The notes below the pieces were generated by a model. The model worked only from the letters and a program-made list of their open reading frames with translations. It had not been told where the DNA came from and made no database searches. A program made the translations under genes and the position numbers. DNA of 27,318 nucleotides, taken from contig MTSL01000050.1 in assembly GCA_002794465.1 (NCBI GenBank), positions 113,194-140,511 on the forward strand, read 5' to 3'. Below, in pieces: positions 6,658-27,138 of the stretch (position 1 is its first letter; each line of letters starts with the position of its first letter). The stretch is from Paramicrosporidium saccamoebae KSL3 (taxonomy: Eukaryota; Fungi; Cryptomycota).

Positions 6658-9072
6658 ATGCCTTTTCGGCGTGTCGCCACCCTTTCGTCAACATCTACCA
6701 ACTTTTCCGAATTCCTAAGCACCTGGAAGTCGGTTACAGATGCGGAGTATGAGACTCACAAGGAAGCCTTTTCCTCTTGCATGGAGCATGGAGAATTGCC
6801 TGTTACTCAAATTATCCAGAATTATTTTGAACGTATCCGGACAGAGTATTCACGACGTGATCGTTATGAAAATAAAGGCGAGTTTATGAAGGTGCTCGTT
6901 CTGGGGAGCAGAATAAAGGCGCTGTATGGACGCCTAGTGCAGGACAATGTTGCCAAAGTGTCACATACTGTACTTTGCTGGATGAATGAAGAACTTCAGA
7001 CTCACATTTCGGCGTGGACGAGCGATCTCAAATTGCGTGTTTGTCCGAGACCTGCTTGCTACGGTCAGTTGGTGAAAGTCTCCATAATGTTGGACATTAC
7101 TCGCGACTGGGTTGCCTCTTTTCCTCTACAGCTTCGCGTGGCTAACTCGAACGGAACAATTTTTTTTGCACTTGGGTAGCAGCACAGGTTTGCCTTACGT
7201 TTTAGGTATTACGGAATCTTTTTATTGGACCAAATTATTGATAGCACAATTAGTTCTGTTAGTCGATTGCACGATCGCTTCTTGCTAAGGGGTGATCGGG
7301 GTCTCTTTATGCGGGATCTACGAAAACTAGTTACCGTGCTCAATTTCCGTTTCCAAACCTATGGGCGATGCATGCAGGTTATGAAACGCAGCGTAGCACT
7401 ATGCAGCGATCTAAAGGCTTTTTCGGAAGAGTCACTTCAAAAATTTCTGGTGCACTTGAAAAATTGTGGCAAGTTTATGATCGAGTACGAGGATGAGGAT
7501 GTTGTAGAGTTCTTGTCCACTTCTTTGCAGGATCCAGAAAGACGAAGAATATTCGACGAGGCCATTAGTGACTTTTCATTTGCCCTCACCGATGACTTTA
7601 GGATCAGAGTCTATCAGGGCGGAACTAGACACGGTGACATTTATGTTGAAAGTCGGCATTCGTGGGTCAAGGACAAGTGGGTTTCTGAGGTGTCTCATTC
7701 GTTTGGTCTGCAGATTACCAACTCGGGCTACTCGCCCATGCCAAAATTGAATTTATGGATGATGAATGTTCGATCTCGGCTAGAGATGATTTCGCTTTCT
7801 TCCTTTTGGGTTACTAACATTCTCGAAGACGGGGGATTTTTGACCGTGGATCCCGCGACAAACATAATGATGCACTACCTTGCCTGTGTGCACAGTGCCG
7901 AAATTCTTATAAATCCGATAAGCCTGTTGGTAGCGTCAACTGGAATGCTTTGGACTGTCACCATGGCAAAGATGGGGAGCTGGTTGTGTACGATGGAAAA
8001 ACTAATCGGAACAGAGTGGTTGACTCAACCGTGGAAAAAGCTGACTTTTTGCATGAACCTTATCAGCCAGTTGATCAGAAGGTGTCCTAAAAGCATGCGC
8101 TTGCATGGCCTTGTCAATGCCATGACAGACATAGTCAATTTATTGCAAGATGACGCCGATCTTAAAACTATTGACAAAGAAAACAAAGACATTAATGAAA
8201 AAATGATCCTCAAAGAGATGACAGTCAAATGTATTGACGAGGCTGTCCATTTAGAGTCGAAAAAGGTTGAAACTTGCGGGCCAGCAGAGGTTAAATACCT
8301 TTATCGTCTGGGCGGGGGATCATTTGGCCAGGTGTATCGCTGCTACGATCCTGTGCTGAATTGCGCCATTGCCTTAAAGGTCGTCACCGTCCCTGCTGCA
8401 GACGCCGTATCTGGCCAGCATCTGGCTTCTGAAATTGGTCACTTGAAGTACATTAACCATCGGAACATTACTCGTCTTCATGACTATGTTGTTCAGGGCA
8501 ACACGACCTATCTCAAGATGGAGCTCTGCGATGGCGGTTCTCTCCAGGACCTGATTAAACCTGGTAATCATGTTGACTTGCGACTGTTCCGGGGCGTTGC
8601 GCATCAGATCCTTCTGGGATTGTCCTTTCTCCATGCCAACCAAATCGTCCATGGCGATATGAAGCCAGCCAATATCCTTTGCGACTCTTTTGGCGCAATC
8701 AAGTTGGCCGACTTTGGAACATCACACTGTCTCATAAACAGCGCCCGGAACGAGACTACCGGCACCTTTCTATACACGGCGCCTGAAGTCTTGGTGGGAG
8801 GGGCAGCCTTGCCACATTCAGATCTCTGGTCAGTAGGATGCACTCTTTTCCATCTGGCTACTGGAATTCCTCCCTGGGCCGACTGTAGAACCTCGTGGCA
8901 AGTCATGCTAAAGGCCTCTCAGAAACAATGCTTCGACTTGACCCCGCTCCATCAATGTCCCTTGCCGCAAGAAGCAAAGGACATTATTTTGGCGTGTCTA
9001 GAGGTAGAGCCAGCATCTAGACCCTATGTTCCAGAACTCCTGGTCACCAAATATTTTTTTGATCCCGAATAG
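6658..9072 (+). CDS. Ser/Thr kinase of STE11/MAP3K type (SSK2/Wis4/MEKK4-like), non-RD, about 794 aa; paralog 1
   Basis: C-terminal kinase domain GGGSFGQVY, AIALK, MELCDGGSL, HGDMKPANIL, DFG, GTFLYTAPE, SDLWSVGC. The two ORF-track pieces (6607-7179 and 7225-9072) are in the same frame and are joined by a 30-nt GT-AG intron at 7176-7205 that removes the TAG. Confidence 0.85.
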
Positions 9073-9385
9073 CAAACCAATGTATATAGTAAACTGTGTC
9101 CGCTATTAACTACATAGCGGTATTCTAAAAGTTGGTTTATCTTGTCCCGCAAATTTCCTTTACAAGTCGCGCTTAAGGGATGATAATTTGTATTTAGAGC
9201 ATGATCAAATAAAAGAGTTCACCTTATGGAAGGAGCTCTACTACTCACAGACACAGCTACTGCTTAGGGCGTGCAATAGTAGCCCTTGTACGTAGGCTAA
9301 AGAGTCCTTGCACCATACAAGCCCATTCTTTTCAGCCTGGCGATTCATCAATTTCACTCGCCACTCGGGGAAACCGGGGGTATAT

Positions 9386-11668
9386 ATGAGCTCGTCCTCT
9401 TTGGCGCTGATTGAAAACTGGGGCATCTTTTTCAATGAAAACTCGGACAAGACTGCTCTTGAAAAGCTTTCCATCCAATCAGTACAAACTAGTATTCACG
9501 AACTGTTCGGTATCATTGAACAAGAGTCGTGGGACTTTTATGATGAACAGCAACAACTGATTAATGCGTTCATAGCCACTGCACGGCTCCGCAATCTGCT
9601 AATCCTATATGGTCTTGAACTATCCACTTCAGCTATTAGAAACATCGACATGCGAATCCGCTCCATGTTTGCCGTTTGGACTGCCAGTTTGCAGAAGAAG
9701 ATGATTCCCCGCCCCGCCAATTTGGGCGATTTTCCCTGCTTCTCTGGGCTACTTGCATACTTTAATAATTTTGTCCGGTCTTTTTCCATTTCCAGCAGTG
9801 TCCGAGGGACGGAGTCTATGCTATTACTGGGTTGTGGAACTAACACGCTGGGACTGGTCGATCAGATCGGCGACTTTCTAATCGTAGCCATTAGCCATGC
9901 ACACGACCATTTCTTACTGAACGGAAATAGAGAAAGACTGATGGAAGAGTATAAAAACATCATGTTCAAGACGATGGGGAGATTGAGGCGACATGTGGGA
10001 TGTGCTCGGGTATTGCGTCAGTTGGCATCCATCTCCTCGCTACTAAATGCTCCTGATCAGGTTGCATTGCAAGAATTCACAGATTACCTAATTGTCACTG
10101 GCAAATTTACTCGAACATTGCAAGATGATGGGTCTGTGCAGTTTGTGTCAAACTCTCTAATCAGAGATACTGCCAAATATGCACTTTTCAAGTATTCTAC
10201 AGTGGATCGATCATCAACCTTTTTTGATGAATTCCGCATCACTGTCGACACTACCAAGCTGGCAGTCACAGTCGAAGGACGCAATTCGTGGGCCAAGGAC
10301 CGCTGGGTCTCTGAGATTACTTCCAAATTCCGCCTCTCCATCGTCCGTGCGCAAATGGCCTCTGTGGCCACGCTGAACCAATGGATGGGTGATGTGCAGC
10401 ACCGATTAGAGACTATTGTTCTCATTATGATGTGGGGAGTTCATCTTGTTAGGAGGGAAAGCTTGCTGGAATTGGACCCGACCTTTGTCTTAACGTGCTA
10501 CTATTACTGTTGTTCGTTTGCCCTGGATACTTTGGAGACTGCTGATGGTGCCATTTCGTGTATCACAAAAGATTTGTGGCGTGCGACTGGAAGAAAGATT
10601 TGTTCTTGGATCGCTGCATCGGCGTCGTTTTGGCATTCTGAATCGCCCAAACTTGCCATGGAAAACACTCTGCTAGCCCTGAATCATCTGGCGCGATATA
10701 TGCACGTCTGTCCTAATAACAATCTTATCCCGTTCAACAGCCTTTGCTCATCATTGCAGAGGCTTCAGGCCGTTGTTCTATCCCCAGCGGCAGCCACTCA
10801 GAGTAGCGAGCTTCTTGCCCACTTTCTTGACTGTTGTCTTGAACGTTGCCGTAGCAATTGCAGCAATTTCGTGTCACCCATAAAAAATACAAAAGGCACT
10901 GGAATCAAGTTCCCCACCATTATTGGTGGCGGCACATATGGCATTGTTTACAAGTGCTTTGATCTCAAACTCAATTCCGCCATTGCCCTTAAAGAAATTC
11001 GTCTCTCTAAAGCCAATGGTAATCTTGCTGAAGAGGTATGCTATCTCAAGTTTCTCAAACACTGCAACATTGTGGCCTTCCTGGACGCAGTCACTACAGA
11101 TGAGGCAGTGTATCTCAAGACGGAACTCTGCCAAGGCGGATCGCTTCTTGATCTTATTACTGCCGGCCCACCTCCTGACTCTCTAAGCTTTAGAAGGATC
11201 ATGGTCCAAATACTGTTGGGATTGACGTTTCTACACGGGAACAACATTATTCACGGCGACTTGAAGCCGGGAAACATTTTGCTAGATCGATTTGGAGTGG
11301 TCAAGCTGGCAGATTTTGGGACGTCGCATTGCCTTGCAAAGGACAGACAGGCATTTCCGATGGGCACGCTCCCTTACATGGCGCCAGAAGTCATATTGGG
11401 CGGCCAAGCCACCCATAGTTCAGACATTTGGTCCCTAGGATGTACGCTCTTCCAATTGGCCACTGGGCTTGCACCTTATGCGGAATGCGAAGGGCTTTGC
11501 CAGACCCTGCTGACCATTTCCCAAGGAAGGTTATTTGATCTGGCTCCGCTTTACAAAGCCCCACTAGAACCATGGATTCAGCAACTGATCTGTTCCTGTC
11601 TCTCCTTTAATCCAATCGAACGGCCGCTGACCACCATCCTGTTGCTCAACAATAACCTTTATGGATAA
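9386..11668 (+). CDS. Ser/Thr kinase of STE11/MAP3K type (SSK2/Wis4/MEKK4-like), non-RD, about 760 aa; paralog 2, intronless
   Basis: IGGGTYGIVY, AIALKEI, TELCQGGSL, HGDLKPGNIL, DFG, GTLPYMAPE, SDIWSLGC. The N-terminal region aligns with paralog 1 (WTASLQKKMIPRPA vs WTSDLKLRVCPRPA; NSWAKDRWVSEI vs HSWVKDKWVSEV). First true ATG is at 9386. Confidence 0.88.
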   Translation: MSSSSLALIENWGIFFNENSDKTALEKLSIQSVQTSIHELFGIIEQESWDFYDEQQQLINAFIATARLRNLLILYGLELSTSAIRNIDMRIRSMFAVWTASLQKKMIPRPANLGDFPCFSGLLAYFNNFVRSFSISSSVRGTESMLLLGCGTNTLGLVDQIGDFLIVAISHAHDHFLLNGNRERLMEEYKNIMFKTMGRLRRHVGCARVLRQLASISSLLNAPDQVALQEFTDYLIVTGKFTRTLQDDGSVQFVSNSLIRDTAKYALFKYSTVDRSSTFFDEFRITVDTTKLAVTVEGRNSWAKDRWVSEITSKFRLSIVRAQMASVATLNQWMGDVQHRLETIVLIMMWGVHLVRRESLLELDPTFVLTCYYYCCSFALDTLETADGAISCITKDLWRATGRKICSWIAASASFWHSESPKLAMENTLLALNHLARYMHVCPNNNLIPFNSLCSSLQRLQAVVLSPAAATQSSELLAHFLDCCLERCRSNCSNFVSPIKNTKGTGIKFPTIIGGGTYGIVYKCFDLKLNSAIALKEIRLSKANGNLAEEVCYLKFLKHCNIVAFLDAVTTDEAVYLKTELCQGGSLLDLITAGPPPDSLSFRRIMVQILLGLTFLHGNNIIHGDLKPGNILLDRFGVVKLADFGTSHCLAKDRQAFPMGTLPYMAPEVILGGQATHSSDIWSLGCTLFQLATGLAPYAECEGLCQTLLTISQGRLFDLAPLYKAPLEPWIQQLICSCLSFNPIERPLTTILLLNNNLYG

Positions 11669-13306
11669 ATGCCTTTTCGTGCAACCACAATGCTAAAGGT
11701 TTCTACTGGAATGCAATTTACGGAAGATGATACTCCTTCCTTTACCTCGTGCAATTGCGACCACACAAAGCGAGAGAATTCTGTTGGAATACTTGATTGC
11801 GGGGGAACATTTGGTTGTGGGAGAGCACTTCAACTCATTGGGATGTCCAATTGCGAAAAGCCGCCTCAATATATCAATGCGGCCTGCAAGCCCAGCATTC
11901 ACGAGCCTGTCTCGATTGAGGATTTAATTCCAAAGTATTCCCACTCAGTACGACTGACACTTAGTGTCGTAGAAACTTCAATCGCTACCGTTGGCGAGGG
12001 ACTTTGCAAGGCAGAGGCCGAGGCGATTCGCTCTAATTTAATTCGACAGCAAGAACAAGTATATTTTATGATGGCTGCCCCAACTTTTATAGTTCCGCGA
12101 ACATCGAATTAAAGAATTCAGTCGAAAATTGGAAAAGATACGTTCCATGTATGACTATCTGACGGCGGAGGAGGTGTTTGAAGTATTAGGATTGTTTAAT
12201 GACGACGAGGATCTTGTGGTCCTGGAATTGACAAAGCCCGAAACTCTTTCGGCGATACGCAAGTCGGTTGCTCTCAAATACACTGCCATCAATAATGTCA
12301 AAGCTGGTTTCATTTCCCAAGGTCCATTAATTGATAGAGAATCTGTCCGAGGCACAGCGGATGGCACAGAAGACTTTACTAGAGCGCCGTGTGCAGTCGG
12401 CAGAACGTGGATTTATTGCCACCAACCGACGTCGCAAGTAGCAGGATTTGTGCACTGTTGACATTTAGAGTTTACAAGTGTGAGGGTCGATTACGTCTGG
12501 ATGATGCCGTTGCACAGTTGGATACCAATTTGGAGGATGCCATGAAAGGCTGGTCCACCGCCCGCGTTAGGGCCTTTAATGCGCTCAAGGATAAGCCCAA
12601 TACGTATTACTATCGATTCAATGCACCGGGTGAGCAGCAGCGCAACGGTGCTTGGACCAGCGAGGAACACCGTCTTTTTATGAAGCGGATCGCCGAAGTT
12701 GGTGCCGACGGGCAATGGGGCATCTTTTCCATGTCCATTCCGGGACGTGTCGGCTACCAAGTAGGCCGCTTGGGATCTATTGGTGATATTTAGTGCGCTA
12801 ATTACTACCGGAAATTGATTCAAGAAGGAAGAGTAACTGACGAGAATTATGTCATTGATCAGAAAGGAAAGGCGCATTATGTATTCGGAACCAAAAGCAA
12901 AGAAATCCGTTTGCAAGAAAAATCACTGAAACGCCCAAATGCAAAAAGAGTGCGATCACAGAGTATTTCCAGTGAATCGGAACAAGAGGCGACAGTCGTC
13001 TCTCCGCTAACCTTGGAGAGTGAATGCGAGGAATCCCAAAATTCCTGTCCAATAAATCCACGCAATGGTGATATCAATCCGCTTCCTGGGTTCATTGATT
13101 TCGTCACCAGACAAGAAGTGACAAGACCTGCCATCTCGCCGTACGGACATGTGCTCAGCTACGATACATGGTTACGGTGTCTGTGTACTGGAGACCGTAG
13201 GAACATTTGTCCCTTTACCAATCAACCACTCTACAAACGACAACTCGTCATTCTCACCGAAGATAACGTGTTCAGCTATCGCGACATGATCCAGCAGTCT
13301 TTATGA
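11669..13306 (+). CDS. SANT/Myb-like plus C-terminal U-box protein, 5 exons, about 502 aa (start codon uncertain)
   Basis: Four ORF-track fragments join through phase-consistent introns 12059-12092, 12307-12337, 12438-12468 and 12761-12793. Myb-like GAWTSEEHRLFMKRIAEVGADGQWGIFSMSIPGRVGYQ|CANYYRKL; U-box-like FIDFVTRQEVTRPAISPYGHVLSYDTWLRCL...CPFTNQPL. Confidence 0.8.
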
Positions 13307-13743: not shown

Positions 13744-15423
13744 ATGCGGTGTCTGAGTGTCCTTGTGCTGGCCAGCACTGCCTCTCTCGCCTCCAGCCTC
13801 GAATTTGTTGCTGTTCCATCTTTTGTCAGTTTGGCTGATGAGTAGTATACGGACAATGGCCCGCCAGCCTGTGGACCTGTTTTTGCACCGGGATTCTGGG
13901 TTCCTGGGCGTGTGCCTGCGTCTGTAGATTGTACCATAAGGGATTTGTCTTACCGGTAGTGAAATTACAGCTTATGGATGCCTCACCTGACACGCCATTT
14001 GGCTATGTCATCTACAATTACGATGATGAGGAATCTATCGGCTACAAGCTGCCTGGCGAGGTTTGTGTCGGTTACATCTAAGGTTATAGAGCACCAAAAT
14101 GCTATTCTGCTCAACCGCAACGATTGGAAAAGGGCCGTGCACCAAAGAAAAGGTGGGACAGCTCATGACTGATGAGAAGCGACCCCCCAAACACCAACTC
14201 CGCAAAGACTGGATCGACTCTTCAAGCGGGAATGCCTTCACCACCAAGACCTCCTTTCCCGTCAAGGAGACTGGATATTATTGCCTCCGAATTGCCAACC
14301 CGAATGCAGGCTCATTGGATGTCAAGCTGAATTTTATCAATCCATATGGAAAGATGCCGCCAGAGTTTTTCCCCCTACTCAAGGTCTCCATGTTTTTATT
14401 CGTGACGTACGCGATGGGATTGTTGGCATGGATTGTATTGTCGGTGAAGCATAGGAAACATTTGGTTTCTCTACAGAATTACATTGGAATTGTCATTGGA
14501 CTGTCATTGATTGAGATGGGAGTGATCCATGCCTTTTACTATCACTTTAACGAGACTGGCGCTCCTTGTAAAATCCTGGTGCGATCGCTAATGTCTAGCC
14601 AATACAATGATGCTGCTCACTTCGGTTTTCAGTGCAGTCAGGGCTACTGCAGCGCTATTCTTCCTTCTTCTAGTCAGCATGGGCTATGGTGTTGTCATGT
14701 ATGCCGATGCCCCATGGCTAATGATGTAGGGCTACTCTGGGTGACAAGTCCAAATCTGTCTATGCCTTGACATTGGCTCATCTCGGATTCTCCGTCTTGA
14801 ATGCGCTGGCTGGGGTTTCTATTCGGAATCAAAAAAGCCTTTTAATTCTGTTGGCTTCTGTGCCCATTTCTGTAACATACACCATCTTTTTTTCCTGGAT
14901 CCTCAATGGACTGTCGGCCACCAAGGAAAGTTTGACGGTACGTAAGCAGAGTGCCAAGCTTGGGATGTATGAACAGCTGACTTGGGTTCTCTTTGGATTC
15001 TTTGGTGCGGCCTGTTTCTTTATGATTGGCGCCGTCTTTGTGATTATCACTTATAACAACAGTCAATCCTGGTATGCCTCTCACTGGAACTGGCTCTGGT
15101 TCTTTTCTGCGGGCTGGCCAATGTTTCTCAACTGTCTCGCCTGCATGGCCGTTGGCTGGATCTTCCGTCCGCAGGCATACAACCGCAGCTACGGGATGAA
15201 TGAAATATCCGAGTTTCCCCTTGACGAGGAGGATCTCGATAACCGTGCAAACATGGCCCTTGATACATTGCGAGCGCATCGCCGTGGCACTGAGGAGTAT
15301 GGAAATCTTAGCGGAAGCATGGATGAGCTCGAAGGACATTCCCGATGGAACACGGGAAGCTTGCAAGCATTTGGTAACGATGATGACTCGGGAAGTGAGG
15401 AGCACGTACTGTCAAAGAAATAA
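13744..15423 (+). CDS. PTM1: PTM1/TMEM87/GPR107-family (LUSTR, GOLD-domain seven-transmembrane) protein, about 6 exons
   Basis: Signal peptide MRCLSVLVLASTASLA; lumenal VIYNYDDEESIG and FPVKETGYYC; NPYGKMPPEFFPLLK; HRKHLVSLQNYI; LLLVSMGYGVV; IFFSWILNGLSAT...KLGMYEQL; WIFRP. Introns at about 13813-13845 (donor ambiguous), 13931-13959, 14061-14089, 14568-14598 and 14699-14729. Confidence 0.85.
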
Positions 15424-15450: not shown

Positions 15451-15765
15451 ATGCGCATGATTATATCTGCGGCGCGACATTTCCTACAAAGACCAGCACT
15501 AGTCCTTTTTAGGAATGCATCAGGTCTTTTACGACCCACCCTACAGAGTGCATCAAGCCTTTTTCAACCTATCATGCAAAATACATTCAAGTTCCCAATG
15601 CACCTAATACCCCTCCGCACCTTCAAGATAAAATCCAGCGTTCGTCTCCGCTGTCCCCAATGCTACTTTGCACGACGGCAGGGCACACTGTTTGTGCGGT
15701 GCAAGTTGCATCCGCGCCACAAACAGCGTCAGGGCCGAGCCACGCGTAAGCAGCAGGTCTTTTAA
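15451..15765 (+). CDS. RTC6: Mitochondrial ribosomal protein bL36m with an N-terminal presequence
   Basis: FKIKSSVRLRCPQCYFARRQGTLFVRCKLHPRHKQRQG is the L36 signature with intact C-x2-C...C...H zinc ligands. The leader is Arg/Ser/Leu-rich and lacks acidic residues. Confidence 0.9.
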   Translation: MRMIISAARHFLQRPALVLFRNASGLLRPTLQSASSLFQPIMQNTFKFPMHLIPLRTFKIKSSVRLRCPQCYFARRQGTLFVRCKLHPRHKQRQGRATRKQQVF

Positions 15766-18449
15766 TAAATGTTGCCTGCGTACATGGTGGATGGATCGGG
15801 CTGCTGGACCAGCTTCTGGTGGAGTAGGGTGAGTGTGTCGGTCCAGTGTGAATAACGTTGGTCGGTGGAGAGAGAAGTGATACTGGGAGTCAGTGCGACT
15901 GCAGTGATGGTGGAATGATGAGCCTGTGCATTAGTGTGTTGCAGATGAAGATTGTGGTCCAATATGGCCAACATTCCATCATCGCCACCCGTCAGTATTC
16001 GTGTTTCATCAATTGCAATTGCATTAATTCCTGATTGATGCACTTTTAATGAGCCCCTCCCCTCCAGCTTTGTCATGTACAGCGAGGATTTCGCCAACAT
16101 TTCATCATCGCCACAAGTCAGTTCTTGTGTTTCATCAATCGTAATTGCCGTAGTTTCCGATTGTTGTACCTTTGAATTTGTCCTTTCCAACGTTTTCACG
16201 GATAGCGAGGATTTCACCAAGAGACCATCGGTGCCACCCGAGTAGCAAATAATCTCATCTCCGACAGTCTTTGTAACCACTTTTAAGCAGCAATGTCCTG
16301 GGTGAGCTTCAAGCTCCGCCAAGTAGACGAAATTTTCATTATCAAACATCCACGCCCGGAGAAACGAATCGGAATATGCAGCAACAACTCTGTTGCCTGA
16401 GACGACCACGTCCATGACTCGTGCTTCTCGCACCCGAGACGCCAACGGCGCAGCTGCAATTTTGCAAAGATGAGAGTCGGACCATCGCCAGCAAGTCAGC
16501 TCCTCGCCCGATCCCCCCACATAGACGAGATTGTGTGCAACAGCAAGGCATTTGATTCCAGAACTGTGTGCAATGATCGTGTCCAAAATTCTTAGCTTCG
16601 AGTCCATAACCACCAATCGCCCATCCTCGCCACCCGTAATGATCGTCTCATCATCAATATGTGCGGATGCGCGTATTTCGGCTCCATGCAGCGGCTCTTT
16701 GATTATCCGCGAAGGAATCTCTTTTAGGAATGTATGGAATTTATATACCTTTCCCAGCCGAATAAATGCAAAAATGCACTCGTCGTCCACAAGTGACAGC
16801 GACCAGAAGCGATGTGCACCACCCGTTGTTAGCCGAACTATCTCTTGCTTGGTAGTAAAGTTGTACAGAAAGAAACTGGTGCCCTCGAATCCTGCTATCA
16901 TTACACGTCCGTCTGGCAGGATGAATACTTTTTCAAGCCAACTCTTGGTCAACTTGTGGCACCATTCCAATTCTAGCTGGTCTCCCACCCGTTTGTATGA
17001 AGACAGTTGTCCATTCCGATCAGTCATCAATAGTTTTGTGTCGACGGTGGATTGAATACAGGTAATTGCCTCTGTTGAGATTCTACCCAAGTCTTTGATT
17101 TCGTTGCTGTCAATGCCAATGTGCAATACTCTTCCATCGCGACTCCCCAGGAGCAAACAGTTTTCGTCCACAATGATTGATGACTTTATGACGGTACTTT
17201 CGATACTTAGGGGGATGACTTGGTATTCATTGTTCGTCGTATTGAAACGAATAATCGATACTTTTCCATCTCCCGCTTGAACCAATATGATACAGTGTGT
17301 TAACATCCATGCTTCAATGTAGACGATGCGAGAAGCAAATTTGCAGTCGACGGAAAACACAGAGTTGCCGTTTTGGATTATTAGCATACCAGACAAATTT
17401 CCAATCAATAATAAGCTGTCGATTGTCTTTAGCACGGCATTTCGTTTAATGTCGTCTGGTGGAATGAAGCAATCAAGCCCCTCCACAGTCCCATCAGCGA
17501 GTAGAGTGACAAGGGATCCTAAAGGGAGGATTGAAAAACATTTTGGTTCTACTGATTTAGAATACGCCATCAACTGCGGCACCGGCTCCTTAATAGACTT
17601 CCATAGCCGAACAGAGCCATCGTCGCCGCCGCTGGCAATTACATCCCCCCGCGTTGCCAATGCCCAAATGTTCATGCCAATATGCCCGTTAAAAAGTCTC
17701 ATACAATCACCGGTCATCTCATCCCACACACGGACCGTAAAGTCTTCAGCTGCTGTGACAATCTTTGTGTCCATACAAAGTACTCGCCAGACTCGGGATC
17801 TGTGGCCAACGGCAATCCACTCGGCCTTGGTGATTGTCTCTGGAAGGATTATAGGAAGCGACCATTTCCTCAGGGTGCGATCGTCAGACACTGAAAATAA
17901 CGCTTTTCCATCCGAGGCGCTGCAAAGACCAAAAATGGATCCTTCGTGGCCCTGTATACTACATCGTTTCTGCAAAGTTGAATTATCCTTGTCGACTTGA
18001 TAAATTTCTATTCCATGAAATACAGTGCCCATTGCAATTAAAATTTCACTGCGAGCTGAAATCACAGTTGCCGAGTATAGCAAAAAGTCTTCCTCGAGGC
18101 AATGCCGGCTTAAGGTCTGGAGCTCGGGATCCAGTATGAACACTTGTCCATGGGCCAAAACCACCATAAAAGTCATCTCAACTATGCTCACATGGACTAT
18201 TCGGTCCGGCAAAGTAGTTCTTGTTCTTATTTCATTGTCTAATACATGAACAAGCTCACGGCCACCACAGGCAAGGAATCCCTCGAAAGCCGGCATGATG
18301 CTTGACACTGTCCCCTTTTTCAATACTTCTATTGTATGTCTAATATCTTTACCTTTTGTATCCCAAATCTCGATACATCTTCCGGAACCGACTGCTAGAC
18401 TATCATCGGCTAAAAAGAAAAGCGCCGTGATGGACAGCCTCCCATTCAT
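15762..18449 (-). CDS. WDR6: WD40-repeat protein WDR6/Trm734(Rtt10), cofactor of the tRNA 2'-O-methyltransferase Trm7
   Basis: 895-aa ORF with many WD repeats and family-like motifs GHEGSIFGL, SVSDDRTLRKW, GHRSRVWRV, HIGMNIWAL, TGGAHRFW, HGAEIRA, TGGEDG, HQSGINAI and TGGDDG. Confidence 0.8.
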   Translation of the reverse strand: MNGRLSITALFFLADDSLAVGSGRCIEIWDTKGKDIRHTIEVLKKGTVSSIMPAFEGFLACGGRELVHVLDNEIRTRTTLPDRIVHVSIVEMTFMVVLAHGQVFILDPELQTLSRHCLEEDFLLYSATVISARSEILIAMGTVFHGIEIYQVDKDNSTLQKRCSIQGHEGSIFGLCSASDGKALFSVSDDRTLRKWSLPIILPETITKAEWIAVGHRSRVWRVLCMDTKIVTAAEDFTVRVWDEMTGDCMRLFNGHIGMNIWALATRGDVIASGGDDGSVRLWKSIKEPVPQLMAYSKSVEPKCFSILPLGSLVTLLADGTVEGLDCFIPPDDIKRNAVLKTIDSLLLIGNLSGMLIIQNGNSVFSVDCKFASRIVYIEAWMLTHCIILVQAGDGKVSIIRFNTTNNEYQVIPLSIESTVIKSSIIVDENCLLLGSRDGRVLHIGIDSNEIKDLGRISTEAITCIQSTVDTKLLMTDRNGQLSSYKRVGDQLELEWCHKLTKSWLEKVFILPDGRVMIAGFEGTSFFLYNFTTKQEIVRLTTGGAHRFWSLSLVDDECIFAFIRLGKVYKFHTFLKEIPSRIIKEPLHGAEIRASAHIDDETIITGGEDGRLVVMDSKLRILDTIIAHSSGIKCLAVAHNLVYVGGSGEELTCWRWSDSHLCKIAAAPLASRVREARVMDVVVSGNRVVAAYSDSFLRAWMFDNENFVYLAELEAHPGHCCLKVVTKTVGDEIICYSGGTDGLLVKSSLSVKTLERTNSKVQQSETTAITIDETQELTCGDDEMLAKSSLYMTKLEGRGSLKVHQSGINAIAIDETRILTGGDDGMLAILDHNLHLQHTNAQAHHSTITAVALTPSITSLSTDQRYSHWTDTLTLLHQKLVQQPDPSTMYAGNIY

Positions 18450-18623: not shown

Positions 18624-21419
18624 ATGGAGCGTTTTATGGCACATTCGGCGGGACATTGCCGTCTTCGAGCCCTCCCGAACGAGTAGCGTCTTTTCTAAAT
18701 TAACATTCTAGCTGCTTCCTGACGGGCGGAAGCGATGGTGAGCTTGCACTTCACCACCTCGATGAATCTTGCAAACTAAGCACAACTGTTCATCGACGAA
18801 TTCACCGTGGCGCCATCACGGACATTTCTGCCACGGATGCGCATTTTATCAGTGTCGGCGAGGATGGTGCCCTGTATGTCACTAGTCACAACGTGCTGGA
18901 AAGCAAACTGACATTTCGAGCGACCTTGCCGCTGCAGACGGTGGCAGTGGACGTTTTGATAGCGGTAGCAGGAGATGAATTGACCATTTCAGTGGTTGAT
19001 TTTGAAGCAAATGTGGTTTGGAAGAGCGAGATCCTCGCCTCTGTGGTAGTGGGATTAGCATGGTGCAATTCTTCTTTGGTATTTTTGTTGTGGAATTAAC
19101 ATTGGCGTAGATTAGCGTGGATGCAAAGGGATTGGTGTCAGTTTGGAAACCGGCTGATGGAGGATATGCAAAGAGTCGCAGTGTGAATATTGGAGTTTCG
19201 CTGAGTAAGTATACCCAAGTCTTTATCAACAGCAAATGGATCATCCTGTGTTGTCCAGATAGTAATACTTTGTCACTACCTATTTACATATTGTAGATGG
19301 ATTATTTATACTCGAAAAGGACGAGCTAAAGATGAAGGAACACATTAAGCCACCCACAGCTGCACATTTTTCTGCAGCCGTGATCCCAGTGCCTGGGACT
19401 GAAGTTGTTGTTCTAGCGCATTCCGAGGGAGCCACTCTAATCAGTAGCGATTCTCTGGAGCTCTCCCCCGATCTACCTATGCCAGTTGCCAATGTCATTG
19501 GAGTTGCTGGAAATGCCCTTGGCAATATGCTCACAATCAGCAGTGATGGTAGCCTTGCTCCATTTTCAGTGACTTTTGCATTTGATGATGCACCCAAGTC
19601 TAAAAAGAGTTCCTTTGACATGTTTGACTCTGACGCCGAGGCAGAGGAGAGGGAGGACGAAGACAAGATTCTTAAACGGGATCGTAAATATATGATGGAC
19701 AGTGAGGAAGAATTTGACGACTACGATGTGGAAGATCCCACCGATCAGCCGGAGCCCGCTATTATTCCACCCTCTACTATGCAGTATCGTCCAGAGTGCA
19801 TCCATAAGCAATTTCAGCCATCATGCACCCCTTTTGTTCATGGGTATCGTTTCCTGTGCTGGAACAATACCGGAATAATCACATCACGTCAAGATGAGGG
19901 GTATTGTAGTGTTGCTGTCGAGTTTCACGACAAAAATTTCCATCGACCAGTTCACTTTATTGACGAGTTTGGCTACACGATGGGCGCCATTGGCAAATCT
20001 GGCTTCATCTTGGCATCTCCCAAGGACGCAGAGAGGCCGTCTATGTTATATATTTCTCCACTTGATTCTCAGGAACGGTCAGCACCATGGTCCATCTCAC
20101 TGGCGCCAGAAGAAGATGCCTTGGGCGTGGCAATTGGTGCTGCTAAATATGCAGTGGTTGCTACCAGTGCAGGATTCTTGCGAACCTTTAGCCCAACGGG
20201 TCTGCAGGGACCGATTGTCAATTTCCCGGGGAGCTTTGTCTCCATGGTCGCCCATGCAAACCAACTATTTGTCCTGACATCTGACGAATTCAGCAGCGAA
20301 TTGGTGTACACATTTTATAGCCTCGATAAGCTTGCACAGCTACGCACGGGTCATGTTGGAGGACGGTTCCGCAATCTAAGACTCGGCTGGATAGGATGGA
20401 GTGATAGCGGTATTGCCGGAATTTTCGACGAACAGATGGTACTTCATATCTGCAATGCGGATGCCGGATATGTCTGGCAGCCATGGTTGGAATGTCGAGA
20501 GCACAAGGAAAAGAAAGAATTAGTTTGGCCAATCGGCTTTACGGCCAACGACCTTTTATGTTTGCAGCTGAGGAGCGGAGACGAACATCCCGAGCCAGTC
20601 CCCCGGCCCATGCCGACGGTGATCCCCATGCAGATTCCGCTCCTGGCCATTGATGATCCAACCGTTGTATCCTTTGAAAGGGCCTTTAGAGCTCATACAA
20701 TCTTCAACTCTGGCTCTTTGCGACCCGAGCTGGCGGATCGAGAGTCTCGAAGGCTACAGTTGGCATCGGACAAACATGTACTTGAGCTGATTCAGCTGGC
20801 AATTCGAGCGGATAAACCGGCCAGAGTTATCGAGTTGTGTCCGTTGTTCTTGATGGAAAAGTCTTGGGATATGGCCATACAATTGGTCAGACACAACAGG
20901 CTTGCGCAGCTAGCCGACCGTATCGAAAACTTGCGCAACAAGACTGAATGCAAGACGGAGGTGCCTTGTGAAACAAGAGTAAGGCCAGCTTTGGTGAAAA
21001 CTCCGAAGGCACTGAGCCAGGTTGCTATAGAGTCCCCGAGCACTACTCTAGCCAACTTGACACCAATCCCATTCAGTCTGGAAGCTACACAATTGAAGCC
21101 TGATGTTCCATTATTTCCCTTGAGTCATTCTGCATTCGATGAATCCACCCAGCTCCCTCCCGAAATGCCCATCGAGCCTGCCCTCGAGACACCCGCGGCA
21201 CTCGCCAATCCATTCGCTCAACTCTCATTTGACACTCCGCGCACAGAGGCAAAGTCGCGCAGCTTTGCAGAAATGATGCGCACAGTCCAGCAGGCTGTCG
21301 AGGCGCCTTCACCCATAAAGAAAGCCAGGTCTGAAGCTCCCGCAGAAAAGACCAAGAGGCAGTCGGAATTGTCGCTCTTTTCAAAGTGCGTGGATGAGAA
21401 CACTGCAGGCAATGAATAA
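18624..21419 (+). CDS. CTF4: Replisome adaptor Ctf4/Mcl1/AND-1 (N-terminal WD40 plus SepB-like domain), 4 exons
   Basis: The 5' exons are missed by the ORF track: MERFMAHSAGHC...D|CFLTGGSDG...TLPLQTVAVDVLIAVAGDELTISVV. Introns 18683-18711 (29 nt), 19079-19110 (32 nt) and 19262-19296 (35 nt; an alternative in-phase donor lies at 19205). Core HKQFQPSCTP..RFLCWNNTGII..VEFHD..HF.D..GYTM and GFLRTFSPTGLQ. Confidence 0.9.
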
Positions 21420-22238: not shown

Positions 22239-23219
22239 TTATTCATCGGGTTCTACTTCTACCTCTTTCCAGACTTTGATGGACTTGTCACCCTCCCCAG
22301 TTAGCAGGCGAAGTCCAGTCCTGTCGAACGTGGATGCGTATATGGCTGCCTCACAATCCAGTGAGCCAGGCTGTGGGATGGAATCCAGTTTTTGGAAGCA
22401 CTCGCCCGAGCCCCAATCCCAAAAGCGCAGCGATCCATTGTCGCCGCCACTGACAAGGACATTATCATGGTTCACTGAGACTGTGTTAATGACTGTGTCA
22501 TGTCCATCAAAGTCGTTTAAAAACGTTCCTTCGGGCAGTTTCCATTTTTTCAAATGGTCAGTGGCACCCGACACAAAAGTATATTCAGTTGGGTGTCCAG
22601 CCAATGTCCGCACACTCCGTTTGTGATGTGTCAGCACGGCCATTGTCTTCCCCGCCACCACATCCCACAGTCTAATAGTTGCATCCATCCCTGCCGTCAC
22701 AATTTGCGGCTTGCACTCGTTGGTAAGGACGGCTGACACAGTCTGCTTGTGTCCGCCCAGCACGTGAATTGCCTGTCTCGTCCGCAAATCCCATACTCGG
22801 GCTGTTGCATCCCTTCCTGCTGTCACTAGTAGGTCCAGTGTGGGGTGCAGTGCTACTGCATACACGCCGCTCAGATGGCCATGGTAATGTCTGACTACCT
22901 TGTTCTGTTCGAGGTCCCAGCATTTGATCATCTTGTCGTCAGACACTGAAAAGAGGTACGGATGACGGGGACTGACAGCAAGACCGCGCACAGAGCCGAT
23001 ATGGCCTGTGAGGGTGAGCTTGAGGGTCCCAGAGGGGAGGTCCCAGATTTTGATGGTACGGTCAGCCGACCCAGAGGCAAACCACTGGTTGGAGACGTCT
23101 ACTGCTAGAGACCGCACCCAGCCAGTATGGCCAGACTGCACCCGCATTAGTCGCCACTGAGAATGTGGTCTGGCATCCGGTCTTTTCGTCTTTGGCTGTG
23201 TAGTAAGCTGCTGGGACAT
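22239..23219 (-). CDS. PRP46: Pre-mRNA splicing factor Prp46/PLRG1 (WD40)
   Basis: [79 protein letters not shown] and [16 protein letters not shown]. First ATG is at 23219. Confidence 0.96.
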
Positions 23220-23635
23220 GTCTTTGTATACAATAGCTGTCCAGGGTGTCCTATAACGGATATTGTACACCGTCTGTGTGATATGATGACGTAGAGATTC
23301 TTTTATCTACGTGCAGAAACCGAGAGCTGTTTCTGTAGGGTATAATATTATTTATAGAGCAAACCTATGGGGGTAAATTTATGGAGGCGGATTCTTTCCT
23401 CTGATTATGCTCTGAATGGACATTATCATTCCTTAGGTGCGAATTGTTTCACCACGTACCAGTCAGCGCTCCTAAACAGGGAGTCTTTTTACCACCTTTT
23501 CTGGTCCATAAGCTTTGATCCGTATATTATGCATGGTGGATTGGTCAACCACGTGACCCAATGTAAGATGCCGTGTCGTTAACACGCTTCAAAATCATTG
23601 GTCGGTTTGTTTATATACTTCACTAACCAACAACG

Positions 23636-24352
23636 ATGGCTCCCTTTTGTCGCGAGAGCCTCATCTCGCTTATTCGTCCACAGCCTCCGCAGAAAATATC
23701 ACTGGCTCAGACTGTCGAAATGCTAGTGCAATCCAATGAGATTAGCATGGAACCTGTGATATTGGAGGATGCCACCGTGGGAGAGGTGCTGGCTACTCGG
23801 ATTATGAGATCCTCGTTTCCCGAGTTCCCAGTGACTGCTGTTGCATCCAATGATTCTACGGAGAGAATCGACCCGATGGTCCAGCTAACACATGCTGCTG
23901 ATCTCATTACTCAGCATGGCATCTCGGTAGAGGGAATATTTAGACTCACCAAGAGCCTCGAGCGGCCCGAAGAATTAGCTTCGATAATTGCGGCAGGGAC
24001 ACGGGCGGATATGGAGCACGACAGTCCTTATGACCTTGCTTCCATGTTAAAGATTTACACGCGAAAATACTATCCAAACATCCTTTCCGAGTCTGATATA
24101 ACGAGCATCAATGAAACCGGCGATGCCGCCACGTTCCTTTCCACACTTACTGCAGAGCGGCGTCGGTTCCTTGCTCTGCTAGGTGCGCTCTGTCGCACCA
24201 TTGACTCGCATCAGGAGACTAACAAAATGTCCATGTCCAATCTTGCTCGCGTCCTCGCTCCGAACCTTTTCCAACACCCCGACCCAATGGTGGAGATGCG
24301 TCTCATTCTGCCCACTATTGAGGCAGCTAGGATTATCATGAACGTTGCATGA
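23636..24352 (+). CDS. Stand-alone RhoGAP-domain protein
   Basis: HGISVEGIFR (arginine finger intact), PYDLASMLKIYTR and NKMSMSNLARVLAPNLF. Confidence 0.9.
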   Translation: MAPFCRESLISLIRPQPPQKISLAQTVEMLVQSNEISMEPVILEDATVGEVLATRIMRSSFPEFPVTAVASNDSTERIDPMVQLTHAADLITQHGISVEGIFRLTKSLERPEELASIIAAGTRADMEHDSPYDLASMLKIYTRKYYPNILSESDITSINETGDAATFLSTLTAERRRFLALLGALCRTIDSHQETNKMSMSNLARVLAPNLFQHPDPMVEMRLILPTIEAARIIMNVA

Positions 24353-24500
24353 ATAAATAGATTTACTACTTGTCCACCACTACAACGAGAATCCCATGAG
24401 CGTTTCATGAATAAGTAGATTTGCTAGTTGACCACTGCTACAGCGAAAATCTCATGAATAAATAGATTTACTAGTTGTCTACTACTACAGCGAGAATCTC
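24349..24500. repeat. Three tandem 47-bp units at the RhoGAP/HSP10 convergent junction
   Basis: Units 24349-24395, 24407-24453 and 24454-24500, with an 11-nt insert at 24396-24406. Unit 1 vs unit 3 is 42/47 identical; unit 2 vs unit 3 is 41/47. Confidence 0.95.
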
Positions 24501-24776
24501 AGATTCGCGGAGAAGCAACGTGGAATCGTCCGTTTTATCGCCGAGGTTTACGGGTGAGCCACCGTAGGTAGGGAGAATGACGATATCACCAGTTTTGAGA
24601 GTGACCTTGTCCTTGTCGCTCCCAGGCCCGACTGCAAGCACTTCACCGCGGTGCAGGGTCTCCTGAGACCCCTCGGGGATAAGGATTCCAGTGGCGGTTT
24701 TTTTAACTGGTTTGAGCTTTCGTACAAGGATACGGTCCAGCAGCGGGATGATGCGCTTAATGGCTTGGTTGGTCAT
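24471..24776 (-). CDS. HSP10: Mitochondrial co-chaperonin Hsp10 (GroES family)
   Basis: IKRIIPLLDRILV...KTATGILIPE...GEVLAVGPG...GDIVILPTYGG...LLRESEILA. Confidence 0.96.
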   Translation of the reverse strand: MTNQAIKRIIPLLDRILVRKLKPVKKTATGILIPEGSQETLHRGEVLAVGPGSDKDKVTLKTGDIVILPTYGGSPVNLGDKTDDSTLLLRESEILAVVVDN

Positions 24777-24879: not shown

Positions 24880-25076
24880 TGTCGTGTAGTGTAGAGGAGC
24901 CGTCACCATGCACAACGTCAGGTGGTAAGAGACGAAGAAATGCGAAAAAAGCGAAAAGAAAACTTGTTCACTGCTAATCCAACGGACCAAGTCATAAGGA
25001 ACCATTAATTGTCATTCGCGGTTAATCCAACGATCCATTTATAGAATACCCAGATGAGCAATCCACTATATCACAC
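24880..25076 (+). repeat. Dispersed intergenic repeat family, copy D (degenerate, 3'-truncated at the neighbouring stop codon)
   Basis: TGTCGTGTAGTG (24880), then TTGTTCACTGCTAATCC (24964-24980, 17/17 with copy A), ATACCCAG (shared with B) and ATCCACTATATCACAC (15/16 with A), in colinear order. Confidence 0.7.
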
Positions 25077-27138
25077 TATGAGCTTGCCAATTCCACCAAG
25101 CTCGCGGCAAAGTCCATTTCCGGTGGGACTGGATCAGTAGAGAGCTCTTGGAGATCGGATCGCAGTTGAGCAATAATTTCGTCTTTGGATTTAATGGCGA
25201 GCATGAGGTTATGGGCTTTGTCCAAGTTGGACTGATCTCGATGTTTGGCCAAGTCTAGGTCATTCTTCAGTTCGATCAGCTTGTCCTGGAGGGTTGAAAC
25301 TTGTTCTGAATGCTGAATAATGAGGCCATTATGATTGAGCCGATCCATAGCTTGCTGTCGCTTCGTTTCGGCAAGCAATGCTTGATAGGATTCTTTTTGA
25401 CTTTGCAATTGCTGTTCCGTACAGGCGAGCTCTAGGGACAGCTTTGAGTTTTGTTGATCGCACAATGCAAGCTGCTCTTCTAGCTCGTAAATTTTGTCAT
25501 TCTTCTGCTGCAACTCGTCTTTGGAAGCAGCCAATTTTGTAGATGTTTCATCCAGGTAAAGTTGGCATTGACGTAGGGCATTGCGCTCCTGCTCCAATGA
25601 CTCTGTTAGAGTGAATCGCTCGCTTTGCAGCAACTCGCCTAGATTGACAAGATCCTCCTTGACTCGGCAGTGTTCAGAACGCTCCTGTTGCAGAAATACC
25701 TCAATATTTTGGGCATTCTCACGTTCGGCATTAAGATTCGTTGCTGTTTCATCGATTTCAGCCTGCATAGCTGATAGTTTGGATTCAAGTGCAGAGATGG
25801 CCTCTCGGTATTCTTCATCCCGAGCCTGAAATTTTGCTTGCTTACGCAACTTGACGAGCGATGCAAGCAAAGCTTGTTCCGAACATGCTTTAGTATCGGC
25901 CGACTTCCAGTAACCAACCCGTTCTCTGACGTGCTGATATAGATCCCTGTTCATCTCAAATAAGCGCCTTTCCTGTCCATATTCAAGAAGAATCGCCCCG
26001 ATTCCATCGGTTCCAACATCATACGCCAGCATCCTGTCTGCATCGTTATATAGCGTCAAAAACTCTTCATCCAAGATTGAGCGATCACCTCCTTCAAGCA
26101 TGTGTAATACTTTAAAGAGACATCTCGCGGCTAACACCGACTCCATTCCATTGCCATGTAAGTGTCGTAGCAATGGTGCCAACACATCGGGACCAATCCT
26201 GCCAATGTTTAGAGAGCACTGGCTAACCGCGTTAAACATTCCACAGAGTAATTCTAATAGCTAAAATAAAGTTGCAGTGTGCGCCAGTGTACTTTTAGAT
26301 TATGCGCAATGTTGGTAGACGTGAATAATCCGCAGAGTTTAACAATGAGACCCTTTTCGATCCACCAAGTGAGTCGATCTTGTATGGTGCGGGAATTGAT
26401 TGCGGCAAGTACAAAATCAATGCCAGCGTACATTTGATCAGAATCTCCACTGCTCACTACTGATACTGCTATCCTAATGAGAGCGTCAATGTTTTCATCG
26501 CTAAACAGCTGTAAGTGTTAGTGCTTGAAAAGAGTTACTTGGCAAGAATGGCAAACACGGATTAGCCAAGTATAACAAGCGAGTAGGATTACGGGAGACT
26601 CTTCCTGGGAAACCTTTTGAATTACTGCGTGAATCAAGTCAGAGTGCCTCTGGATATAGTCTAATACTCTTTCGTTGCGTGTCGCCTCGATCCAGGACAA
26701 AGCATTTTCGTTATTCATTTGATCACAAATCATAAGGATTAACGTTTCCTCCAAAATGTCCTCCCATTTGATTAGTCGCTGGAGACACATGGAAACTGGG
26801 CACGTTTCTGACAGGGCACTTTCCAAGAGGAAATTCCGAAGTCTCTTGTCATTTTTGAAAATTTCCTGGAAATCTTGAAACTCACAGAGCGCTTCGATTA
26901 CGGAAAGGACCAGACTAGGATTCTCTGCTTGCAAGGACTCGGTGACTAGTCGGTGGCAGAACTGCCACGCAACGCTACGTCTCTCGGGCGCATCCCTTTT
27001 AAATAGCACAGAGATTATTTTGTTCGGTTTTGTCTGCAGCTGCGGGAGGAATTCTGCCTGTAGTCCTCGAATAGACTCATTGGTGGATTCATCGGACGAC
27101 TCGGGTGGCAATTGGCAGAATTGCTGGATGGCCTGCAT
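25076..27138 (-). CDS. N-terminal ARM/HEAT-like plus long C-terminal coiled-coil protein, CIP2A(KIAA1524)-like; 3 exons, about 666 aa
   Basis: Exons 27138-26539, 26508-26293 and 26260-25076, with phase-0 introns 26509-26538 (30 nt, CTAAC branch point) and 26261-26292 (32 nt). Heptad-rich E/Q/K/L C-terminal half. The CIP2A similarity is a by-eye comparison with the remembered human sequence. Gene structure confidence is high; identity confidence is moderate. Confidence 0.6.

Follow-up and report, generated by a model that had tools for sequence, protein, structure and literature searches.

We examined a stretch of 27,318 nucleotides (nt) from Paramicrosporidium saccamoebae KSL3 (GenBank assembly GCA_002794465.1, contig MTSL01000050.1, positions 113,194 to 140,511 of the forward strand), which is referred to as the window throughout, and in it a gene at 25076-27138 on the minus strand. 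A preliminary description, made from the sequence alone, had placed this gene in a reduced fungal relative and had proposed that it encodes a relative of the animal protein CIP2A. The first part is borne out, as P. saccamoebae belongs to the Rozellomycota and is an amoeba parasite, and the locus is a genuine three-exon gene. In the list of open reading frames (ORFs) the gene appears as three pieces (26518-27138, 26254-26457 and 25076-26239), which are joined through introns of 30 and 32 nt into a protein of 666 amino acids (aa). A single GT..AG combination keeps the reading frame with the junctions proposed earlier, and both introns are in phase 0. The coordinates of all features of the gene are given in Table 1.

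Relatives of the 666-aa protein are few. When 1.84 billion representative proteins were searched exhaustively with phmmer, only 7 matches were obtained, all of which are metagenome ORF fragments within one clade, and word-indexed homologue searches returned only the NCBI entry for the gene and close fragments. The relatives P0003-P0007 and the loci L001-L005 show 25-83% identity. The closest lineage comprises P0003 and P0002, which probably stem from one organism, and four further lineages with 25-43% identity to the 666-aa protein could be rebuilt from metagenome contigs (L001/L004, L002/L003, L005). Regarding conservation, the six-sequence alignment places the most conserved block of the family in exon 2, with the pattern LF..DN[IMV]D.L[IV]R[IV]..G..F..R..W..[KR]GL. 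A degenerate DNA pattern for this block has one match in the window (26348-26493) and one in each of the five related loci, with 0 expected by chance. A hand-made pattern with fixed spacing, which matches all six known loci, found nothing further in the metagenome contig collection. The six-sequence alignment contains no stretch conserved enough for a search of these contigs, and a second family alignment gave 324 pattern matches in them, none of which was confirmed. As far as these searches reach, the family thus appears to be confined to Paramicrosporidium and four environmental lineages related to it, and ultra-short introns occur in each of them.

Both splice junctions are confirmed by four environmental relatives. 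The start position and the first residues (MQAIQQFCQLP..) are common to the 666-aa protein and to P0003, L005, L001 and L004. Intron 1 is found at the same codon boundary in the metagenome relatives, with lengths of 36, 41, 44 and 36 nt, and intron 2 lies at the same place in L002 (39 nt) and L005 (38 nt); intron 1 is common to all five lineages and intron 2 to three of them. L001 and L004 carry no intron 2 and read through as ..NCDLLELILS.., matching the junction between ..NLK and LLELLCGM.. in P. saccamoebae, which confirms that LLELLCGMFNAVSQ is coding. The NCBI entry for the gene is "hypothetical protein PSACC_00603" with a length of 623 aa, and the exon 3 product shows 100% identity to the matching parts of it. 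The public model has a first intron of 117 nt (donor GTAATT at 26625) and a second intron of 74 nt, by which VIQKVSQEESPVILLACYTWLIRVCHSCQ and LLELLCGMFNAVSQ are deleted, in total 29 + 14 = 43 residues, which every relative conserves. The end of exon 1 (..IRVCHSCQ) is kept in the relatives as ..IRVCHSCQ or ..LRICPSCP, which rules out the earlier donor of the NCBI model. Since all rebuilt relatives keep the residues dropped by PSACC_00603, the public model is mis-spliced, the true introns measure 30 and 32 nt, and the gene model of the preliminary description, with its three joined ORF fragments, is right.

Both P. saccamoebae and its environmental relatives have, as a rule, ultra-short spliceosomal introns of 30-44 nt. 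These introns mostly have GTA.. donors and ..TAG acceptors, some of them with a CTAAC branch site, and their positions are kept across lineages with only 25-40% protein identity (L001 1967-2002; L004 3825-3865; L002 4434-4477 and 4694-4732; L005 1004-1039 and 1259-1296). A Myb/SANT-like neighbour gene at about 12.1-13.3 kilobases on the plus strand of the window contains two such introns, 12436-12466 (31 nt) and 12761-12793 (33 nt); splicing of the second restores a motif in which ..GRVGYQ is joined to CANYYRKLI. Gene callers that work with a minimum intron length will mis-annotate genes of this kind, and the conserved introns documented here are ones that standard annotation pipelines misplace.

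The N-terminal ~395 aa of the protein are predicted to form an all-helical domain of the armadillo (ARM) type, an assignment to the ARM-repeat superfamily that is supported by structure models and by profile matches. Members of this superfamily are all-helical solenoids built from three-helix repeats of ~42 residues. The AlphaFold2 model of the head (aa 1-420, input a five-sequence alignment) is all-alpha with 24 helices, a predicted local distance difference test score (pLDDT) of 67.6 and a predicted template modelling score (pTM) of 0.55. A model of the central part (aa 184-396) is likewise all-alpha (pLDDT 65.8, pTM 0.61), and both rest on 4-5 sequences. When the whole head was compared with the PDB by Foldseek, we obtained 18 matches at E <= 1e-3, and every one was an ARM protein or a related solenoid; the top 50 include designed ARM proteins, importin-alpha, beta-catenin and Kap95, and Vac8 is also found among the matches. 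With the central model (pLDDT 65.8) no Foldseek match reaches E <= 0.001. Family profiles match ARM repeats 8-10 of importin-alpha in the PDB (E = 0.004-0.05), and phmmer with the head alone gave no matches there. One Pfam match, MOR2-PAG1_C with 20.6 bits (cutoff 25), was dismissed, as it is present in the 666-aa protein only and has no counterpart in the relatives.

A coiled coil of ~255 aa probably follows the ARM domain, an arrangement also found in CIP2A and supported by composition. Only two Pro/Gly residues are present in aa 389-648, leaving runs of 91, 103 and 64 residues free of both, and the segment is rich in E, Q, K and L with about 40% charged residues plus Gln. Pfam matches on the stalk are restricted to coiled-coil noise (TMF_DNA_bd, HAUS1, Fez1). 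The Foldseek matches of the head and the composition of aa 389-648 thereby agree with the preliminary description as far as the architecture is concerned, an ARM-like head and then a long coiled coil. The last ~90 residues of the stalk are conserved across lineages in the C-terminal alignment, with the pattern ..RL....L..QH.E....LQ..L..L...L.......R.......I..KD..I.QL..ELQ.L, and a tail motif recurs at the aligned C-termini (..DPVPPEMDFAASLVELASS in the 666-aa protein, ..DPHQMDEENMADFSNLSLDIDLK in L004 and ..SLSDVDFNAIETSWT in L002). A function of this tail can only be inferred.

Between near relatives the stalk varies in length, as P0002 (aa ~225-290) carries in its coiled coil an insertion made of tandem units of ~11 residues each (CNQQNS[RKV]L[LS]LE[IL]E-like) that is absent from the 666-aa protein (aa ~545-560). 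The Joint Genome Institute label of this fragment, "chromosome segregation ATPase", is a typical mislabel of coiled coils.

CIP2A, an inhibitor of PP2A-B56 in animals, forms homodimers through its 331-560 region and binds B56 and TOPBP1, the latter at its BRCT5-6 linker. The likeness to this protein had been described as an in-register match of six short segments to human CIP2A strings. We found that these strings are real CIP2A sequence: a query built from them identified PDB entry 5ufl_A, in which they lie at about residues 70-80, 226-250, 258-275, 286-308, 342-348 and 359-366. Residues 1-467 of human CIP2A were recovered from PDB alignments and used as target for hhalign. A search with a human CIP2A fragment returned vertebrate exon fragments only, and a profile on the CIP2A side is therefore no deeper than the vertebrates. 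The six-sequence family profile aligns aa 198-339 to CIP2A 222-386 with 22% identity (score 34.8, P = 8.6e-4 for one pairwise comparison, probability 23.5%), and the greedy alignment is colinear from near both N-termini (Q29-352 vs T28-399). For five of the six segments the register is the one described before, and these five coincide with family-conserved positions. The first segment fails: PSLVLSVIEAL, which had been matched to ASLILSIIGLL, is not conserved in the relatives, and the family profile of aa 1-200 scores 1.2 bits against human CIP2A with filters off, with 324 out of 3000 shuffles scoring higher.

Controls for the hhalign comparison gave scores of 20.2 for reversed CIP2A, 21.3 for the best of 72 shuffles and 10.9 for an idealised ARM consensus. 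KPNA2 (importin-alpha-2) reached 26.4 in the same query region, and 19.2 when the 666-aa protein was left out of the profile. The control sequences for KPNA2 and designed ARM serve as generic ARM yardsticks only; the PDB-wide searches agree without them. With a profile of four relatives (without the 666-aa protein and P0003) the register against CIP2A is the same (29.1, P = 0.0055), and it survives with the three most distant sequences only (21.5, P = 0.063). Single sequences gave P = 0.1-0.67, the 666-aa protein alone P = 0.1 in a different register. A signal that grows in this way with profile depth, from single sequences over four to six members, follows the pattern expected of remote homology. 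Addition of vertebrate CIP2A fragments to the CIP2A side lowered the score to 30.3.

Regarding the meaning of this likeness, we lean towards a lineage-specific ARM plus coiled-coil protein, tied to CIP2A through the ARM superfamily only, with the match reflecting a generic helix-2/helix-3 pattern. The hmmsearch results over the 177,635 sequences of the PDB argue for this reading. A profile of the full head lists importin-alpha (E = 0.27) and not CIP2A; with filters off (--max) CIP2A scores 13.7 bits vs 13.5 bits for importin-alpha. When the profile was cut to aa 198-342, CIP2A came first (E = 0.0023) and importin-alpha second (E = 0.0038), the former E-value being optimistic since this segment was chosen after the CIP2A alignment was known. 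With the "natural" unit aa 201-420 importin-alpha is first (E = 0.046) and CIP2A third (E = 0.37). Importin-alpha thus ties or wins when the profile boundaries shift, its ARM repeats 8-10 reaching E-values in this block that equal or surpass those of CIP2A. A profile of aa 1-200 has no CIP2A match in the PDB and gives a plainly spurious match at E = 0.027, from which it follows that such E-values mean little for these shallow profiles. CIP2A lacks the signature motifs of the family, DN[IMV]DxL[IV]R and WxxKGL, and only 4 of the 14 family-invariant residues in the matched block are identical in it. The top Foldseek matches, being idealised designed ARM proteins, importin-alpha, beta-catenin and Vac8, and the restriction of the family to one clade are also in line with a lineage-specific protein. 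It is less easily reconciled with the hhalign scores, in which CIP2A exceeds KPNA2 with the full profile as well as with the reduced ones (34.8 against 26.4, 29.1 against 19.2), and with the architecture, as few proteins combine an N-terminal ARM head with a long C-terminal coiled coil, CIP2A being one of them.

A true but highly diverged CIP2A orthologue, descended from the same ancestral opisthokont gene and serving in mitosis as a dimeric scaffold for PP2A-B56 and/or the TopBP1 homologue Dpb11, is in our estimate unlikely. The same domain order, the colinear hhalign match with a register that is stable in subsets without the 666-aa protein, and the first rank of CIP2A with the aa 198-342 profile speak for it. 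Foldseek adds support with the central model, where 5ufl_A leads the list in TM-score (0.51) as well as in identity (20%); it stands at rank 7 with E = 0.072 and a root-mean-square deviation of 5.2 Å over 162 columns, model quality being limiting. For the whole head, however, 5UFL is not among the top 50. The Pfam family CIP2A_N (PF21044) has no match at E <= 10 by hmmscan in the 666-aa protein or in any of the six N-terminal domains of the family, nor in the five best-matching fragments of 107-145 aa, very weak matches being hidden by the HMMER speed filters. In the same database vertebrate CIP2A fragments do match PF21044. The comparison with the CIP2A N-terminal model, which the preliminary description had suggested, essentially ends in the outcome that it had set beforehand as speaking against its claim, the lack of a significant CIP2A hit.

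The N-terminal end of the protein adds to this. In CIP2A the N-terminal head (aa ~1-85, including K21) binds B56 and is reported to be conserved from human to lancelet (PMC9974998). No counterpart of this head is detectable by profile comparison in the first 200 aa of the 666-aa protein. Were the family a rozellid remnant of an ancestral opisthokont CIP2A, the central ARM block and the coiled-coil dimeriser would have been retained and the B56-binding head lost or rewritten; we regard this version as unlikely too. In a literature search for CIP2A outside animals none was found; the papers describe CIP2A in animals only. Three independent methods (hhalign, the PDB profile search and Foldseek with the central domain) consistently rank CIP2A first or close to first among natural proteins, in agreement with the architecture, but no method separates the likeness from generic ARM similarity. 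The likeness does not clearly exceed chance or what is common to ARM proteins, and any ARM-repeat protein could give a resemblance of this sort. With PF21044 silent, importin-alpha level with or ahead of CIP2A in the PDB profile searches and the B56-binding head undetectable, we place the protein in the ARM-repeat superfamily and call its domain plan CIP2A-like. Membership in the CIP2A family is not established, and hence neither is the ancient opisthokont CIP2A-TOPBP1 pathway that had been deduced from it; the present evidence does not justify the claim of an ancient CIP2A.

A very diverged vesicle-tethering golgin of the Uso1/p115 type, which had been named beforehand as the alternative best match, fits the plan with its ARM head, ~255-aa coiled coil and short tail with acidic residues, but is highly improbable: Pfam Uso1_p115_head and Uso1_p115_C have no match, no p115/Uso1 chain occurs among the PDB profile matches or in either Foldseek top 50, and the head measures ~395 aa compared to ~650 aa in p115. 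The identities Uso1/p115, TOG-domain (Stu2) and importin-alpha were all rejected, either because profile and fold support is missing or because the architecture is wrong.

Taken together, the 666-aa protein is probably a scaffold of a rozellid family, in which an ARM alpha-solenoid of ~395 aa is followed by a coiled coil of ~255 aa with a conserved end segment and a short tail, and which would act as a dimeric adaptor or tether. The data show the gene model, the fold class of the head (ARM), the composition of the coiled coil and the conservation within the family. Several points weigh against this interpretation. The confidence of the AlphaFold2 models is moderate (pLDDT 66-68) with shallow alignments of 4-5 sequences, the TM-scores of the Foldseek matches are low (0.3-0.45 for the whole head, 0.3-0.5 overall), and hmmscan against Pfam (E <= 10) yielded no family, ARM or other, at threshold. 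The coiled coil was deduced from composition and Pfam noise matches and not from a dedicated predictor, and dimerisation and peptide binding would have to be carried over by analogy. The same applies to any link to PP2A-B56 or TopBP1/Dpb11.

If the scaffold works as its anatomy and the analogy to CIP2A and p115 suggest, the coiled coil would form a parallel homodimer, a long stalk with two ARM solenoids at its tip. Short extended peptide segments of partner proteins would be bound in the solenoid grooves, while the conserved C-terminal segment together with the tail would attach the dimer to another structure and so provide a second attachment site. Overall such a molecule would function as a dimeric adaptor or tether in the manner of CIP2A.

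With this analysis the gene model of the public hypothetical protein PSACC_00603 is corrected and a small unannotated ARM plus coiled-coil family is defined in Paramicrosporidium-like rozellids. Should the link to CIP2A nevertheless prove true, CIP2A would predate the split between animals and fungi and would have been lost in the Dikarya model yeasts, and an intranuclear parasite with a compact genome would make use of a scaffold of CIP2A with Dpb11/TopBP1 (or PP2A-B56). CIP2A would then change from an "animal" oncoprotein to an ancient opisthokont scaffold, and one could ask which of its roles is ancestral, the control of PP2A-B56 or the TopBP1-dependent tethering of mitotic breaks.

Table 1. 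Exons, introns and protein segments of the ARM plus coiled-coil gene (positions in the window)
Feature	Residues	Position	Strand	Remarks
Exon 1	aa 1-200	26539..27138	-	ATG at 27138; N-terminal half of the helical head
Intron 1		26509..26538	-	30 nt, phase 0, GTAACT...CTAAC...ACAG
Exon 2	aa 201-272	26293..26508	-	contains the most conserved block of the family
Intron 2		26261..26292	-	32 nt, phase 0, GTACAC...TTTTAG
Exon 3	aa 273-666	25076..26260	-	ORF 25076-26239 lengthened upstream in frame to the acceptor; stop 25076-25078
Predicted all-helical ARM-type head	aa 1 to ~395	25892..27138, introns included	-	AlphaFold2, Foldseek, PDB profile matches
CIP2A-like segment	aa 198-342	26051..26547	-	likeness to CIP2A 222-386; equal likeness to importin-alpha ARM repeats 8-10
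Predicted coiled-coil stalk	aa ~396-650	25127..25891	-	includes the conserved C-terminal segment of ~90 residues
C-terminal tail	aa 651-666	25079..25126	-	acidic/aromatic motif "DP ... [MV]DF"

In L002 (71-2319) and L004 (1-1812), which stem from two distant environmental relatives, the upstream neighbours of the family gene on the opposite strand are the same, a 6-phosphofructo-2-kinase/fructose-2,6-bisphosphatase gene and a glyoxalase-domain gene, a case of conserved microsynteny; of the region upstream of the P. saccamoebae gene, the window includes 180 nt. Elsewhere in the window, 7225-9072 (+) and 9308-11668 (+) encode tandem paralogous protein kinases with 35% identity over 619 aa (E = 6e-119), which share a ~350-aa N-terminal region without Pfam match upstream of a C-terminal Pkinase domain, in what looks like a lineage-specific tandem duplication. 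A Ctf4/Mcl1 (And-1) homologue is located at 19332-21419 (+) with Mcl1_mid (E = 5e-65) and Ctf4_C; its ORF as listed does not include the N-terminal WD40 propeller, which points to an upstream exon or a shortened protein. Further genes assigned by Pfam are a mitochondrial-type Cpn10/Hsp10 (24471-24776, -), a RhoGAP-domain protein (23636-24352, +), a seven-bladed WD40 protein of the PLRG1/Prp46 type (22239-23270, -), an 895-aa multi-propeller WD40 protein (15762-18449, -), a patatin-like lipase with DUF3336 (3616-4827, -) and a PTM1/GOST seven-transmembrane protein (14099-15423, +), the last in two frames and probably with another short intron. These six genes have no bearing on the ARM plus coiled-coil protein.

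Compared with known systems, the 666-aa protein shares features with several ARM-type proteins. Uso1/p115 has a similar overall plan, but sequence, profile and structure searches gave no match to it and the head of the 666-aa protein is much smaller. Vac8, a fungal ARM-repeat adaptor, was found by Foldseek with the central domain at TM-scores of 0.45-0.50 and E-values of 0.06-0.24, which are not significant; it has N-terminal acylation motifs and no coiled coil, and there is no match between it and the 666-aa protein at the level of sequence profiles. Importin-alpha is represented by many chains in the Foldseek lists, and its ARM repeats 8-10 align to aa 210-317 (E = 0.004-0.05, PDB-wide). In contrast to the 666-aa protein it carries an N-terminal IBB domain before ten canonical ARM repeats, lacks a long C-terminal coiled coil and differs in total length, while the 666-aa protein has no match to Pfam IBB, Arm or Arm_3 at E <= 10. 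CIP2A (KIAA1524; PDB 5UFL; PF21044) differs in size, with 905 aa and a head of 560 aa as opposed to ~395 aa, and its likeness is statistically no better than that of importin-alpha. Like the 666-aa protein, CIP2A begins with a helical ARM-type domain from residue 1 and continues in a long coiled coil, and the two show a local colinear likeness with about 21% identity over ~140 residues (aa 198-342 vs CIP2A 222-386).

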